A DNA stretch of 63,991 nucleotides, the filler included, from Choristocarpus tenellus KU-1152 (lineage: Eukaryota; Protista; Phaeophyceae), in assembly GCA_964200185.2 (NCBI GenBank). It is 12 parts of 12 records of this genome, joined end to end, with 100 filler letters (N's around TTAATTAATTAA, not from the genome) between each part and the next. Parts side by side here need not be neighbours in the genome. Positions count along the whole stretch, not along the records: positions 1 to 7,832 come from CAXNAD020005514.1; 11 more parts are not named here. The stretch is one strand, 5' to 3'. Made by a program: the position numbers and the translations under genes. Below are positions 287-7,773 of this stretch, one piece after another. The notes beneath the pieces are model-generated. The model did no database searches. It saw only the letters and a list, made by a program, of their open reading frames with translations, and was not told where the DNA came from. Numbering within the stretch: position 1 is the stretch's first letter; each line of letters begins with the position of its first letter.

Positions 287-2485
287 TTATTGCATCAAGC
301 TCCCTGCAAACCACAAGACCTGTGCAAATGTCCCCACCATAACAAGAATAGTTGACAGTAACGAAATCCTACCCCTTCCCCCTTCAGCCGAGTTCCCAGT
401 TTCCCTTTCGCCAGCCCACCGCTGAGTCTCTCCCCCCCCCCGCCGTACACCTTGCATCAAGTTTCGCAAGTGGGCTGCGGAGCGTTCATAACCTTTGGAC
501 CCTTCCCCATCTGACCAATCACCCCAATTGCATAGGTCTGCAGAACAACAGCTCAATGCAATGCCATCTGGGCGGCATGCCTCAGCTGCACATACACGGT
601 CCACCACTATCGGTGCCAGGGAGGGCAAATCCAGGTCTTGATCGGCCTCCTCTGGGAGAGTAGACTCCCGTGGTATCTTGATTTGACAGGAGAGGATAAA
701 ATGATAGACATAATATGTTTATCGATACAAACTAGGACTACATTTTGTTTACCGTGTAATCACCCATGATAACTACTGTCTTCAACCTTATCCTGTCACA
801 GCTCAGGACAAATCTGGGCACTCCTGCCCACATACTACCAAGTGTACTATGGTAGATTGTAGGGTTAGTAGTAGTAATGCTCATCATTGTATATTTCAAA
901 CAATAACCCTCAAGTACGGACAAAATAGCACATTCTATAAAAATTCTATAATATTGCAACAGACTGCAGTGGAGCCCTGGTCCCTGTACAGCACATGAAA
1001 CTGCAACATCACCTGTTACAAGCATACTAAAACGGATAATTTTTGATTTAACAGTGCAATATGGCCGTCTGCACAAGAAACTGTTAAGGGGAGTATGGGT
1101 ACACCATACACCATCACAATGTCCTTCCCACAAGCACAATTTAAATGAAGTAAGTGTACATTTCACCAGTGGGCAGCGGCCAGGAGATCACCATTTCATG
1201 TGTTGCCTGCAAATGCATGGTTCCCTCGTGTATGAATGCAGGGGCGAATGAAAAGCTAAGGTCTGTTCCCTACAATAAAAACAGAAATTTTCATGCTATC
1301 ATTTTGATTAACACTTCCTCAAAAAAATAAAAATAATCACAAAGATGCTAATGTAAAACTCCTCTAAAGTACTGATACTAGCTCCAAAGAGATGTATCTT
1401 TACAAAACATCCTGTATCGCACAATGATAGAAAACTGAAAAACACCATAGGCGACAAAAGCAACCACAACCCTCCAAATACATCCTGAGTAATGAAAGTC
1501 TGCTGCATCTCGCATCTAGATGTTGGTGATAACATTAAAACTGTGACAAGTGTAAGTGTCACGAAGTACGCTCCCAGCAGGCCATTCCCAACATTTAGGA
1601 ATCATGTTGATAGATGGCACTAGGGCAGTCAAATCAAGCCTAACCGTGCCATAAGTAGTTCGGAAAAAATCGTGAGCACAACGCCATTTTTGATTAGTGA
1701 CATCCTATGCATGATACCAGGAACCAGCTATTTGATATGTTTTACATCATAAATTGTTTTGCAGATAAATTGGAAACAAACCTTCAAGTCATTCCAATGT
1801 TCTTTCAGTTGTAAATCATTGTACCTATCTGCGGTTCTCGGTATTGAACCAATACCACTAGTTCAAGATAGGTTGGGACCAAGGGTTGATCTCCACCCCA
1901 GAATCAAGACCATGCTGTCACAAATATTGGATGGAGCTAGGATTATTAAAAATATTGTTCTACTCACCACAGCGCAAAAGCGCTCCTCCCTGCCACACTC
2001 CTCCACCTTAGCTGACCTCACGTCACTCTCTCCCCCACAATCAGAGCAGGTATAACAGCGCAGTCCCTCCGCTAAGAAGAGTGCAACACGCGAGAGGAGA
2101 TTGCTTATAGTGAGGGGGTCAATTAACAAAATGTTCTTGTCCACAACCTCTTAGTATTCCACCTCCATCTCAGGAAACCACCCAATCTCGGCACACCAAG
2201 AAATCCTGCCAGCACCCTTTCCACACAGCACAATTGTGCTACCATGAACTTACATGGTTGGATTCCAAAGTACATCTGGCAATATATTGGTCACAGCGGG
2301 GAATCACCGACGTGTTACCAATAAGAAACTATGTTGGGGATGATGAACATGACAAACATGTCTATATGCACACAAAACTAGCTGTACTCACAATACCGAA
2401 GCAAGCACAACGCTATTAGAAGAAAAATATTTGCTCCCCATCTTCCCGTCCTCAAAACCAGTCCATGTTGCGGTCTCAGTTCCAT
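287..2485 (-). CDS. Ly6/uPAR (LU, three-finger)-like secreted protein with predicted GPI anchor; exons 2485-2392, 2071-1968, 676-287 (~195 aa)
   Basis: Spliced on GT-AG sites in compatible phases. Signal peptide MELRPQ...IFLLIALCLLRYSEG, then LRCYTCSDC..EEC..RFCAV | IPRE...DRVCAAEAC..LSCCSADLCN. This gives 10 Cys with the LxCYxC start and CCxxDLCN end. A G/R-rich linker and a hydrophobic C-terminal tail (LLSTILVMVGTFAQVLWFAG) follow. Confidence 0.75.
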
Positions 2486-2831: not shown

Positions 2832-4897
2832 ATGAAGCGCGTATTCGGGAAGAAAAAGGAGCAAGTCCCAGCCCCTTCGCTGGAGGAGGCTGGAGGAAGA
2901 GTCGATGAACGAGTGTCGAAGATTGACGCGAAGGTGACTGGGTGTGCATAAACTTCCTGTTCGTTCAGTAGTGAACCATGCCAACATGGATGTGGATGAA
3001 TTTTCGACCATTCTAAAGCTTCCATATCTTACTGGCGAGTGTTCTGCCAGCGTCCTACTTCCTATTAGGGATGTTGTAGTGCGTAGTGGAAAGTATTGCT
3101 CTTCTAACACTGCTCCATGTTCACATGTCAAATATTATCCTGGCTTGCACTCCCCTGTATTATTGTTGGACATTCACTCTCACCACGAATCATACTGATT
3201 AGATCAAGGGGTTAGACCAAGAGCTTGTAAAGTATCGCACAGCGCTAGCTAAGGCCAAGGGTCCAGCGGCTGCAAATATCAAGCGGCGGGCACTGGAGAC
3301 GCTGAAGCGGAAGAAAATGTACGAGCAGCAACGGGACCAGATGGCGGGACAACAGTTCAACATTGAACAAACCAGCTTCGCAATCGATTCCATCAAGGAT
3401 ACGGCGACAACGGTATGTCCGTTCCCCGATCATATCCCTTATCGTGCATTCAATTCTATGGAGTGACTCTATCGACTGTGACTAACTACTGTAGGCTACA
3501 ATGTGATCAATGGAACAGGACTACCTGTCAGCATTAAACTTTCCCATCTTCTACAGAGTCTTTAGACAATGTATGATATCTCCACATTTGCGACATCTGT
3601 GCTGATGCATCGTAGGTGTCGGCAATGAAGGCTGCGGGGAAGAGCCTGAAGACCGAGGTGAAAAAGATGGACCTGAATGAGATCGAGGACTTGACAGACA
3701 ACATGGCGGACATGATGGAAGACATGAACGAGATAAATGATATAATGGGCCGATCATACAAGTAAGGTTTTCCCTCGTACACTAAAGTTGGTGAACCCAC
3801 CGTGATCTTTATGTTGATAATATCTGGCCAACATCATCGCAATAATCCACAATACAGAAATAAATCCTCTCCAAATATGGTGACGTTTTTCTTTTGAAAG
3901 GCGAGGGTACAGTAGCAAGCTTGTAGCACATGGATACGGTTGTGTATCACTGGCCTCGTCTTTCTGCTACCTGGTTCAACCTGAACCTCATTTTCTCACC
4001 ACCACCTCTGCCTCGATCATCCAGTGTTCCAGACGAGCTGGATGAGGATGACCTGGAGGCTGAGCTCGCTTGCCTTGATGATGAACTTGAGGTAAAGAAA
4101 GTGGTATGCTTACTCCTTTATTCCAGAGCAATATAACCTCGTCCTTACCTCTCGACAAGAGGAAGGTAAATTCATGATACATACTTGGAAATATTTCTGG
4201 GTTAGCATAGGGTTGGGATTAGCTACGAGAGAGTTTTGGCACTATCAAGTGTGTAGCAAGTTCTAATTATAGTTAGAAGAAAATCCAATCTTAATGTGTC
4301 AGTCAATGGTTCTTATTCCTGAACTGCAGCACTGACCTCCTTTCCCCCCTCCCTTTCCCTTCACTGATGGCACTGAAAGTATCAGTAAGGTAGAGGAGGT
4401 TGCATGGCAAACAAGTCTTACTGACTCAATGTTCCATAGACACTATTCTATCGGTGCAACTGTTTCTCTCTTGTGTGACATATTGTACCCCTTGATCTTG
4501 GTATGATCTCCCCCCTCCCCCTGACATAATTTCTACCTTTGATCCAAACAAAATTAGAAACACCAAGATTACTCCTCATATTCAGAAGAGAGAGGCATGG
4601 TTTGATTTTATCTAGCACATTGTACCTCTTGCAAAACATTATTCCATCTTCTTGACACCCCCGTCTAATTGAACAATGGTTTCCTACTGATCGGTCGATG
4701 TTGACGTTTTACTGTACTTGAAGGGCCTGGAAGACATTGAGGCAGATGAAACTTCAGCGTACACCCAACCGGCAAGCCTGCCATATGAGCCCACTGCATT
4801 ACCAGAGGCTTCTGGACCATCAAGAGTGGATGAGTATGGTCTACCTGTGGCTCCATCTGTAGCACAACCTTCATCCCAAAACGAGATCAAGTTGTGA
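2832..4897 (+). CDS. CHMP5: Charged multivesicular body protein 5 (Vps60, ESCRT-III Snf7 family); exons 2832-2933, 3203-3412, 3616-3761, 4025-4091, 4724-4897
   Basis: Spliced translation MKRVFGKKKEQVPAPSL...KRRALETLKRKKMYEQQRDQMAGQQFNIEQ...DELDEDDLEAEL...VDEYGLP. All introns are GT-AG with matching phases. Confidence 0.95.
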
Positions 4898-7596
4898 CAT
4901 GTTGTGAAGGGGGTGGGAGGTTGTGTGGAGGGCACAGATGGTGGCTTGGGAGCACTAGGCTCTGTACAGCTATGCTGGGTGTGGAGGAATATGGGTGCAG
5001 CCTGACTTGGAGCTGGGACATCTGCTGAAATGATCTGTTCAAGTATAGGCCAATCCCTGCCCCTCTGGATTTCTCATGGAATGAAAATTGATTTCAAAAA
5101 AGTTGTTTGTATTGTGTAGATAGTAAGTAGGATCTCTTGTGTTGCTGGTATCATCATCAAGTCCATTTTCTGGACTCCCACAAGTGCCTAGTTATGTGTG
5201 CTTTGGGGGTTTCAGTTCAAGGTCGTAGTATAGTTCCAACTATTGTTTTACCCTTCAACGAGTGAGAGTTAAGGCTTTGTGTTTGTTGGGAAATATTCTT
5301 TAAGGGATGTGGGTGATTTAACATGGTTGGATTTGTTCCAGTGGTAGCGAGCTATCCTTTGTACACTGATTGATTGGCAACCTTGAAAAATATCTCTTAG
5401 GTCTTCATCACTGGCTGTTCAGTGAGCAATATATTGATTGAGAAAACCACACCTTCCTTACCAGTGTTACGTTGAAAGTTGAAGGTATCCTATTCCTTCC
5501 TCTATATTTTTCATCTTATTTGGCTTTCATGCAGAAGAATTCAGAAGGTCCAATACTAGATTGTATGATGGGGTAAGGAGTGTGTGGAGACTCCAACTTG
5601 TTTTATAGGCCACTACTCCATGATCATGTAGTCCTTTTGTAGGAGCATATGTTCGAGGGGGAAAAGAGTAATGGTACTAGATTTTTGTCCAGAGTAGTTG
5701 AGGATGCCCTCTAATATTGCCATACACTTGGAAGTTCACAAAGTTCCAAAAGGTTTGAGAGCTCCAAGGTTGGCCATGGTATGTGCAGATTTGTCCTTCT
5801 GCAGTCCTTGATATGCTCTAGCCACATTGGTTATTGGATAGATATCTATTATTGCTTGGCTTCTACGCATCTGTGTGCTTGGAGCTAGCTCACCCTTAAC
5901 TGAGTGAAGGAGGGTGTGACTCTTCCATCCTGGTCTATCCCCTCCCTGAATATAGCAGTAGAACATACCAGTAGTGCAAGGGTTGAGCTTGTTTCATTGT
6001 GTTAAATATTGAAGTAAAGTATCACAGTAGTACTGGTTTTATGAGAAAGACGTGGGTATAATGTACATCTTGAATTGAATCCCTTGCAGGTATATTAAGG
6101 TTGCAAGGCAATGCACCCAACCAACTTCTCTTAACCAAAATAATGTTTTCAGGACTCTGTGTAACACTTTGTTCAACCTTATTCGTGTTGGGGTTCAACG
6201 CTCCACAAAAGCAAAAACACGTTGTCACTCACTACTCTACTCGATGTCAACTATCCTATTAACTCATGCACATGCCAATCTTCAAACATATCACAACAAT
6301 GCTCGGACTCATTCAGTATGCGCTTCTGGTCTTCATGGATGTAGATGTCAGACCCTGCTAAACTGAAGAGGTTGCCTCTTTCATTCTGCAATCTGGATGG
6401 TAGTTGTGGAGTGGATTGTTGAAGACTTTTTTCGTCTATTTGTTATGTTGCCGTACCTGGATAGAACAATTTAAGACCTTACACCAATATCATCTGGCCA
6501 GGACTTGACACGGAACCCAATGTATGACTCTTGAGGACTCTTGTCATACGGATTGTGGTTCTTCAACTAGCCTAGGCAACCATGACCAAAGAACAGGGGA
6601 GACACTGCCATCAGAGTTGTAGTTAAGTACCATAGTTTACTTGTATTTTTATTTTTTATCAGCTCCTTTCCCAGTTGGAGTAACTCACCTGTTTCTGCTT
6701 GTTCCTACGATCTCTGCAGTGAATGATGTCAAAGAGCTCTGCACTGGAGCATATGGCAACTCCTCTAAACTACATGCAGCCAGTGCAATTGAATTGACCT
6801 GATTTTTCATTCAATTGTGTCACACAAGTAGTGTGTATTTCAAAGCATTATACTTCACATGTCCAGCAACAAGTGCAAGGCTAAACCACAATACTTGAGG
6901 AGTAGCAACACTTGGATGTGTTTGAGGTATATATTATAACCATCCTTGTAGAAGCTGTAGCCAAACAGGAGACTACTGGGAGCTTCTACACTTTTGTTGT
7001 ATATGTTCTTCTCATCTGCCCATACAATAGTAGGCACTCTTATCTAATGGTGTACACTATCAAGCTGTGCTCTCATAATCACATAGGGACACGGTGATGC
7101 AACCAATGTTTTCCCACCAAATCCCAACCAGAATCTAGAGCATCACCCTATCAAACACAAGTCAATCGTGCAATTGAAATCCTCCACAAATAGCACAGCC
7201 GACCATGATTTGCTGTAAGTAGATGTGGAAAATCATTCTGCATGCAGTTGCCTTGACATGTACCAAGCCAACACAACCAGAAACACACTTGAATGGTGTT
7301 GACCTACTTGATAACTTGTCTCTCCACCTTATACTCCCACTGCCCCAGTCTCAACAGTCCTATGCAGCCCTACCTTGTATCAGTGGACAACAGTACCACT
7401 TAATCGATTCTGCTATCCGATCATACCTTTTGCCTGTGCTCTATTGCCCTATGCAGTAGTGCGTCCTGCAGTTGTTGTGCTCCTCCATGATTGTCCTGTC
7501 CAAACATGTTTCACGTCCTATCTTGGTTTTGTTGTTTGGATCAGCCATAGCTTAAAGCGCTGCTAGACATTGCTTGAGCTTCTGTGCTCCACCTGA

Positions 7597-7773
7597 TTAA
7601 TACGTGGGGGCTGACATGTGACCCCAACATCCAGGCACACCACAACGGCACCTTGGTGCAAGCCTACCACGGTCACTTCCTAGTGGTGGGGGATACAGGT
7701 GGAACAACTCCTCGTCCGCCTCCAACTCTCGAAGGGCAAACAGGAATATGCGCATTTTCCCTCCAATATGGAT
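7597..7773 (-). CDS. Terminal exon of a SET-domain lysine methyltransferase with post-SET motif (5' part beyond the contig end)
   Basis: After the acceptor ttctctttgacag it reads IHIGGKMRIFLFALRELEADEELFHLYPPPLGSDRGRLAPRCRCGVPGCWGHMSAPTY*. This matches the SET C-terminal 'RI.lFA.R.i...EEL...Y' and the post-SET CxCx4C motif. Confidence 0.8.
   Translation of the reverse strand: MHIGGKMRIFLFALRELEADEELFHLYPPPLGSDRGRLAPRCRCGVPGCWGHMSAPTY

Follow-up and report, generated by a model that had tools for sequence, protein, structure and literature searches.

The brown alga Choristocarpus tenellus KU-1152 carries a three-exon gene whose predicted product joins a signal peptide, the ten ordered cysteines of a Ly6/uPAR (LU) domain and a C-terminal hydrophobic tail. 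The gene lies on the minus strand of contig CAXNAD020005514.1, which supplies the first 7,832 nt of the stretch of DNA that we analysed (the window: 63,991 nucleotides, made of 12 parts of genome assembly GCA_964200185.2, itself 164 Mb in 27,310 contigs). Our analysis leads us to conclude that this is probably a functional, single-copy nuclear gene of the alga, that it belongs to a brown-algal family, and that its product is a secreted, membrane-tethered LU protein of the cell surface, most likely held there by a glycosylphosphatidylinositol (GPI) anchor. Homology of the family with the LU superfamily is likely, and convergence is the main alternative. LU or three-finger proteins include CD59, Lynx, uPAR, Bouncer, the snake toxins and the ectodomains of TGF-beta receptors. 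Far from being peculiar to a single contig, the family described here extends across the brown algae.

Structure of the gene

The initial annotation of this locus had proposed that three short open reading frame (ORF) pieces join in phase into a signal peptide, an LU domain with all ten cysteines and a hydrophobic tail, and every one of these elements is present (Table 1). The start codon of exon 1 has A at –3 and G at +4, and the exon encodes a basic n-region followed by a hydrophobic core (best nine-residue Kyte-Doolittle mean 3.48) before ending at the donor T/GTGAGT. The first junction is in phase 1 and falls three codons upstream of the predicted mature Leu, which bears out the earlier placing of a phase-1 intron near the signal cleavage site. 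Exon 2 reads (S)EGLRCYTCSDC...C...FCAV, with cysteines at its residues 5, 8, 11, 25 and 32, and closes with the donor GTG/GTGAGT at a phase-0 junction. Exon 3 supplies cysteines at its residues 29, 34, 43, 44 and 49, the last three within CCSADLCN, and has a short Gly/Arg spacer between G-N-S-A and the tail.

Read together, the exons would give ten cysteines in the LU consensus order, opening with L-x-C-x-x-C and closing with C-C-x4-C-N. In the same genome, a clean CC-x4-CN arises by background about one to two times in 440,000 six-frame positions, and the two background cases seen were either of low complexity or contained stops. Joining of the exons in Choristocarpus is predicted from their splice sites and phases, and the three-exon arrangement is not due to chance because it is conserved across species. 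Searching the genome for paralogues with exons 2 and 3 recovered the LU locus alone. A word search with exon 3 among annotated proteins returned zero matches, without even a self-match, and therefore no annotated Choristocarpus protein of 71-226 amino acids (aa) contains this exon; current brown-algal annotations leave the gene as an "unnamed protein product" or, in Choristocarpus, miss it entirely.

Two other stretches of the genome with weak PF00021 matches were rejected as candidates. That on contig C18370 (1759-1932) has an in-frame stop (TGA) and no C-terminal motif, and that on contig C11628 (650-985) is a tandemly duplicated fragment of which one copy has a stop. The C11628 repeat is a tandem unit of ~170 bp encoding Y-R-C-Y-N-C-T-S..., and both stretches may be decayed LU fragments or chance matches.

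Orthologues and selection in brown algae

An exhaustive search of 1.84 billion representative proteins with exon 3 alone gave 12 matches, the best at 6.5e-16. Exact look-ups named two of them, CAN0014199.1 of Discosporangium mesarthrocarpum (P0016) and CAM9715780.1 of Sphacelaria rigidula (P0028). P0016, an independent gene model, has a signal peptide, an N-terminal half with the same L-R-C-Y-T-C-S-D-C-G-G and a matching C-terminal half; its identity to the window is 68% in exon 2 and 61% where exon 3 is matched. Further members, from Hapterophycus canaliculatus, Scytosiphon promiscuus, three Ectocarpus species and Undaria pinnatifida, together with unnamed run assemblies, came from a profile search, and the family is present in at least nine brown-algal taxa including Choristocarpus. 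Every family-profile match that bears a name is a brown alga, the same search returned no animal LU protein at E<=10, and the viral contigs searched held no relative.

The gene structure is shared as well. Mapping of proteins to contigs placed the introns in the annotated models of Discosporangium, Sphacelaria and Hapterophycus at the same positions and phases (phase 1, 3-4 codons before the mature Leu; phase 0, 2-3 residues after Cys5), and the same exon pieces occur in two further loci (L049, L050). All ten cysteines, the stalk motif (G-Y-R-R-S-x-E-H-x-R-x-L-M-E-G), N-S-A and the tail (consensus approximately A-T-V-L-V-I-V-G-T-F-[AS]-Q-x-L-W-L) are conserved across the family alignments, and small residues stand at –3 and –1 before L-[RQ]-C in every member. 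Between the window and four orthologues, the proportion of synonymous differences (pS) is 0.76-0.98, that is, saturated, and the proportion of nonsynonymous differences (pN) is 0.20-0.31; this low pN against saturated pS places the protein under purifying selection. Shared gene structure, synteny and selection exclude chance ORFs, a pseudogene and contamination.

In most orders, loop 3 (from Cys7 to the Cys-Cys pair) is extended by 20 to ~100 residues of low-complexity sequence; it is compact and canonical in both Discosporangiales (Choristocarpus and Discosporangium). The inserts of Sphacelaria and the Scytosiphonaceae (P0028, P0030, P0031 and P0033) are 65-100 residues long and rich in Ser, Thr and Pro, and are possibly O-glycosylated. 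In the model from Ectocarpus sp. CCAP 1310/34 (P0036), Tyr replaces Cys1 (L-Q-Y-F-S-C), which would leave Cys5 unpaired and may be a sequence or model error.

Relationship to the LU superfamily

Scores were read against the Pfam gathering cut-offs of 24.8 bits for UPAR_LY6 (PF00021) and 21.2 bits for Toxin_TOLIP (PF00087). Exon 2 alone aligned with positions 2-31 of the 82 in UPAR_LY6 but fell short of the cut-off (16.9 bits, E=0.0087), and exon 3 alone matched no Pfam family. Among 177,635 PDB sequences, the top 17 matches of the LU part of exon 3 were three-finger snake neurotoxins (E 0.04-0.9), aligned in register at the toxins' C-terminal ends, and exon 2 gave only zinc-ribbon-like CxxC noise. 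Language-model features of exon 3 pointed with weak scores (0.81-0.85) to LYPD6B, LYPD1 and Ly6E clusters. The exon-2 Pfam, exon-3 PDB and feature matches would all place the gene in the same clan, and none of them would carry the claim alone.

The initial annotation had suggested a check against Pfam profiles, in which the window exons taken singly stay below the cut-off and the full-length orthologues fall on either side of it. Full-length P0028 of Sphacelaria scores 25.0 bits with UPAR_LY6 and 24.8 bits with Toxin_TOLIP, above both cut-offs; P0016 of Discosporangium aligns from end to end with Toxin_TOLIP (20.6 bits) and with UPAR_LY6 positions 2-80 (17.3 bits), both just below them, and P0032 scores 20.5 bits. 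UPAR_LY6 was matched by 9 of 26 alignment rows, many of which are fragments (best E 3.3e-7), and Toxin_TOLIP by 7; the only other Pfam families among these rows were cobra-type toxin and CD59, both of the LU clan. C-terminal fragments of the family gave weak Activin_recp matches (E ~0.015), and the precomputed tags of the protein collection already include PF00021 for two members. Searched against the PDB, the family profile retrieved human SLURP-1 first (E=0.0026, across the whole domain), followed by a long neurotoxin, a three-finger toxin and the BMPR2 and ActR1B ectodomains. Features common to the family and SLURP-1 other than cysteines include P-E-[ED]-x-x-C, [DT]-R-x-C-[AS]-S-S and C-C-x-x-D-L-C-N. 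Since LU-clan families and three-finger structures alone were recovered, the earlier claim of an LU/Ly6-type protein in a non-animal genome is supported.

A second proposed check, for a predicted three-finger fold, gave a divided answer. An ESM Atlas model of P0016, itself of low confidence, fell with LU clusters over residues 104-188 in 9 of 10 rows at template modelling (TM) scores of 0.69-0.79, these clusters being arthropod and cnidarian uPAR/Ly6, uPAR, the PLA2-inhibitor/Ly6 type and LYPD6B, and the best Atlas feature match was a SLURP1 cluster (score 0.87, 170 features in common). AlphaFold2, however, run on P0016 and P0032 with brown-algal alignments of 13 and 26 rows, gave a predicted local distance difference test (pLDDT) of 40-75 in the LU region. 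The stalk motif is modelled as a helix in both of these orthologues.

Origin of the contig

The longest contig of the assembly is the plastid genome, and its rbcS and two 16S copies in opposite orientation indicate a red-type plastid. The psbA protein encoded beside rbcS equals that of Choristocarpus tenellus letter for letter (CAM9099716.1, CAM9377295.1, YP_011005532.1, WAM62395.1). Nuclear contigs contain at least 63 matches to light-harvesting proteins, and a nuclear-receptor zinc finger, looked for in the assembly, was not found; an animal host was rejected on these two grounds, and a diatom host was rejected because the assembly has no silicon transporter. Among 20 sampled nuclear contigs, GC content ranged over 0.40-0.455 and the observed/expected (o/e) ratio of CpG over 0.33-0.63. 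The LU-gene contig, at 0.442 and 0.41, lies inside both ranges, and principal component analysis of tetranucleotides places it among the sampled nuclear contigs and those that bear light-harvesting complex (LHC) genes. A search of the assembly with an exon of the neighbouring CHMP5 gene gave one match, on this contig, and no second copy. On the strength of the psbA identity, the light-harvesting matches, the composition and the lack of a second CHMP5, we assign the contig to an early-branching brown alga (order Discosporangiales) and exclude an animal or human source. The initial annotation had argued against an animal contaminant from the CHMP5 neighbour.

Neighbouring gene and other features

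The LU gene and CHMP5 diverge from neighbouring start codons (Table 1). CHMP5 also stands head to head with the LU gene in three other loci (L047, L049 and L050; Discosporangium and two other assemblies), and this conserved divergent pairing suggests that the spacer between them may act as a shared bidirectional promoter. Synteny is not kept on the far side of CHMP5, since two other brown-algal loci have DNA polymerase alpha subunit B there; in the window, no gene, RNA family or repeat was recognised at 5000-7500. At the contig edge, the minus-strand ORF 7597-7755 resembles the end of a SET domain with a post-SET domain (R-I-F-L-F-A-L-R-E-L-E-A-D-E-E-L ... C-x-C-G-x-x-x-C-x-G). Pfam gave no match to this ORF, which probably represents a final exon, the rest of its gene lying off the contig.

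Table 1. Coordinates of the LU gene, its CHMP5 neighbour and the spacer between them, in positions of the window
Feature	Position	Strand	Description
LU gene, exon 1	2485-2392	minus	ATG 2485-2483; n- and h-regions of predicted signal peptide; 31 codons and 1 base of a split Ser codon
LU gene, intron 1	2391-2072	minus	320 nt, GTGAGT...TTAG; pyrimidine-rich tract, then TTAG/C
LU gene, exon 2	2071-1968	minus	End of predicted signal peptide (S-E-G) and N-terminal half of LU domain (Cys1-Cys5)
LU gene, intron 2	1967-677	minus	1291 nt, GTGAGT...CAAG; phase 0; 3' end CCTCTCCTGTCAAATCAAG/ATA
LU gene, exon 3 (whole)	676-287	minus	C-terminal LU half, ~45-residue stalk, G-N-S-A, tail; TAA stop 289-287
Exon 3, first part	676-527	minus	C-terminal LU half: loop 2, then Cys6-Cys10, ending CCSADLCN
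Stalk motif	493-449	minus	GYERSAAHLRNLMQG, window copy of the family motif
N-S-A	394-386	minus	Candidate GPI omega, omega+1 and omega+2 residues
C-terminal hydrophobic tail	367-290	minus	26 residues, mean Kyte-Doolittle 1.58, ends at TAA; GPI signal or membrane anchor
Spacer between start codons	2486-2831		346 bp, between divergent LU and CHMP5 start codons
CHMP5/Vps60 (Snf7 family) gene	2832-4897	plus	~233 aa; Pfam Snf7 on single exons; splice sites read
CHMP5 exons	2832-2933, 3203-3412, 3616-3761, 4025-4091, 4724-4897	plus	Five exons

A DNA search of the genome with the whole window found shared stretches in homopolymer G/C runs only and no interspersed repeat linking contigs. Long G/C runs stand at both ends of the LU-gene contig (43-99 and 7800-7832) and are matched in many other contigs, often at their termini, and the assembly seems to break at such runs, which may be genomic or a sequencing artefact. 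CpG is strongly depleted throughout the nuclear sample. The depletion is weaker around LHC genes (o/e 0.49-0.78), and the ratio rises to ~0.9 at the mitochondrial rRNA locus and approaches 1 at those of the plastid. Such a pattern points to CpG methylation in Choristocarpus, which would be notable as Ectocarpus is reported to lack it. The assembly also has several incomplete 18S copies of nuclear type whose scores differ widely, among them one on contig C9714 that is ~550 bases longer than the model positions it covers; these divergent copies could reflect insertions, degenerate ribosomal DNA copies or minor co-cultured eukaryotes.

Discussion

The architecture of the product suggests a simple path to the cell surface. 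The N-terminal signal peptide would direct entry into the endoplasmic reticulum, and cleavage after S-E-G would leave Leu-x-Cys-x-x-Cys at the mature end, where animal Ly6 proteins have theirs. The chain would then fold into one ten-cysteine LU three-finger domain, with disulfides predicted by homology to link cysteines 1-5, 2-3, 4-6, 7-8 and 9-10, and this domain would be displayed on a stalk that includes the conserved helical motif. The C-terminal signal would hold the protein at the outer face of the membrane, GPI transamidase most likely attaching the anchor at the Asn of N-S-A; less likely, the conserved tail would be retained as a transmembrane helix. By analogy with animal Ly6, CD59, Lynx and SLURP proteins, the mature product may be a small surface module that binds another extracellular or membrane protein.

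Several results weigh against this interpretation. Taken singly, the window exons all fall under the Pfam cut-offs. The LU region has a mean pLDDT of only 52 and 57 in the two AlphaFold2 models, which is low confidence, Foldseek found nothing with one of these models, and the Atlas model that matches LU folds has itself a mean pLDDT of only 0.53. The stalk and the loop-3 inserts are without counterpart in typical animal Ly6 proteins, and the internal intron does not fall at the loop-2 tip as it does in animal genes (PMC6600238). Such points could be accommodated if the protein were a convergent cysteine-rich fold, a brown-algal invention that mimics the LU cysteine pattern and has no ancestry in common with animal LU proteins; the borderline scores of most members (17-25 bits), the lack of a confident AlphaFold2 fold, the absence of relatives outside brown algae in the family-profile search and the displaced internal intron would all be expected of it. 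We nevertheless consider convergence improbable. The similarity reaches beyond the cysteines (L-x-C-[YF]-x-C, P-E-E-x-F-C, [DT]-R-x-C-[AS]-S-S, and C-C-x-x-D-L-C-N with its hallmark Asn), the full SLURP-1 domain is covered in register, all families retrieved by three different methods lie within the LU clan, and the order of signal peptide, LU domain and C-terminal anchor is held in common, as is a three-exon gene with a phase-1 first intron. Still less credence, next to none, goes to an animal or other foreign contaminant contig or to ORFs that lie together by chance. In favour of these readings, LU domains count as metazoan (PMC13719153), the fragmented assembly has several divergent partial 18S copies, and the exon 2 Pfam match alone is not significant genome-wide; against this stand orthologues in at least eight other brown-algal taxa, in independent assemblies and beside the same neighbour gene, a contig with the composition of the host and its sole CHMP5, and purifying selection on the protein.

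The mode of attachment is less settled than the LU identity of the domain. The initial annotation had called the protein GPI-anchored, and the layout of omega site and tail on which it relied is conserved: N-S-A is found in nearly all members (N-A-A in Undaria, N-S-S in P0041), with 6-11 polar residues before the tail, and the genome encodes the GPI transamidase subunit Gpi16/PIG-T (94.6 bits). Yet the tail is also the most conserved segment of the family, with an amino acid identity of 0.54-0.71 and pN of 0.15-0.24 at near-saturated synonymous sites, and this leaves room for a transmembrane anchor. A pN of ~0.15, lower than that of the LU domain, is unusual for a cleaved GPI signal; it tells against our reading and would favour a retained helix, and the tail is indeed modelled as a helix in the Undaria AlphaFold2 model (pLDDT ~90). 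The protein would then have the LU domain as described and be a type I membrane protein, held by its C-terminal helix with almost no cytosolic tail and no GPI. We regard this as possible but doubtful, given that the hydrophobic stretch ends at most one residue from the stop codon, that a nearly invariant N-S-A, a variable linker and the tail together make up the classical layout of a GPI signal, and that PIG-T is encoded in the genome. GPI attachment at the Asn of N-S-A thus appears the most likely outcome.

A 2026 survey reported three-finger proteins in all animal phyla and none in the examined fungi, plants and two choanoflagellates, dismissed one olive-tree match as contamination, and tied the origin of LU proteins to animal multicellularity (PMC13719153), in agreement with the general view of a metazoan distribution that the initial annotation had noted. 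Our data do not fit an animals-only distribution, as the host of this gene is a brown alga and eight further brown-algal taxa have the family. In our searches of the literature we met no account of LU proteins from brown algae or any other stramenopile, and the Phaeoexplorer preprint makes no mention of them; earlier documentation of such proteins as widespread in stramenopiles, which would have undone the initial annotation, was thus not encountered. The novelty lies in an LU/three-finger surface protein beyond the animals, one whose conserved stalk is long, whose loop-3 inserts vary and whose anchor segment is conserved to an unusual degree.

We lean towards the view that this is a genuine homologous LU family, the first outside animals, which was present at or before the base of the Phaeophyceae, having arisen either through an ancient transfer from animals or from an older eukaryotic domain, has since been kept as a single gene beside CHMP5, and would serve as a surface recognition or receptor-modulating module. 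A conserved, selected, single-copy brown-algal LU gene challenges the picture of LU/three-finger proteins as an animal innovation. Complex multicellularity evolved independently in brown algae, and if our reading is true, this independent lineage would, like the animals, possess the LU recognition module. The family offers a tractable test case because Ectocarpus has genetics, and a lone LU module at the algal surface raises questions of gamete or cell-cell recognition, wall sensing and pathogen interaction, as well as of horizontal transfer.

Comparison with known systems

The archetypal LU gene of animals has three exons, one for the signal peptide and two for the domain, with phase-1 introns flanking the latter, the GPI signal in the last exon and an internal intron at the tip of loop 2 (PMC6600238); the intron at the end of the signal peptide that the initial annotation had noted for animal LU genes is thus on record, and in phase 1. 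The algal gene has the same three-exon layout, with a phase-1 intron before the domain and the candidate GPI signal in the last exon. This shared layout is suggestive and is not proof of common ancestry, because phase-1 introns at signal-peptide boundaries are common among secreted proteins.

Animal Ly6/uPAR proteins (CD59, Lynx1, Ly6E, the LYPD family, SLURP-1) resemble the algal protein in several further respects: a predicted cleavage just before L-x-C-x-x-C, the ten-cysteine "plesiotypic" pattern ending C-C-x4-C-N, and a candidate C-terminal omega site with a hydrophobic signal in the last exon. SLURP-1 is both the best solved-structure match and the best Atlas feature match of the algal family. 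In contrast to its animal counterparts, the algal gene is found in brown algae as a single copy syntenic with CHMP5 and not in gene clusters, its internal intron is in phase 0 and lies 2-3 residues past Cys5, and its product has a stalk of 45-110 residues with a conserved helical motif before the omega site, a loop 3 that in most orders is lengthened by up to ~100 low-complexity residues, and an unusually conserved tail.

The ectodomains of TGF-beta, activin and BMP receptors (PF01064, Activin_recp) have the three-finger fold that is proposed for the algal domain and share its C-C-x4-C-N ending. These type I receptors carry a cytoplasmic kinase, whereas nothing follows the hydrophobic tail of the algal protein, and UPAR_LY6 and Toxin_TOLIP are the better fit for the N-terminal half of the latter. 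Snake three-finger toxins (PF00087, PF21947) gave the top PDB matches of exon 3, with the C-terminal disulfide knot in register, but they are secreted venom-gland products of squamates without a membrane signal and mostly have eight cysteines, and nothing in the algal protein suggests a toxic role.

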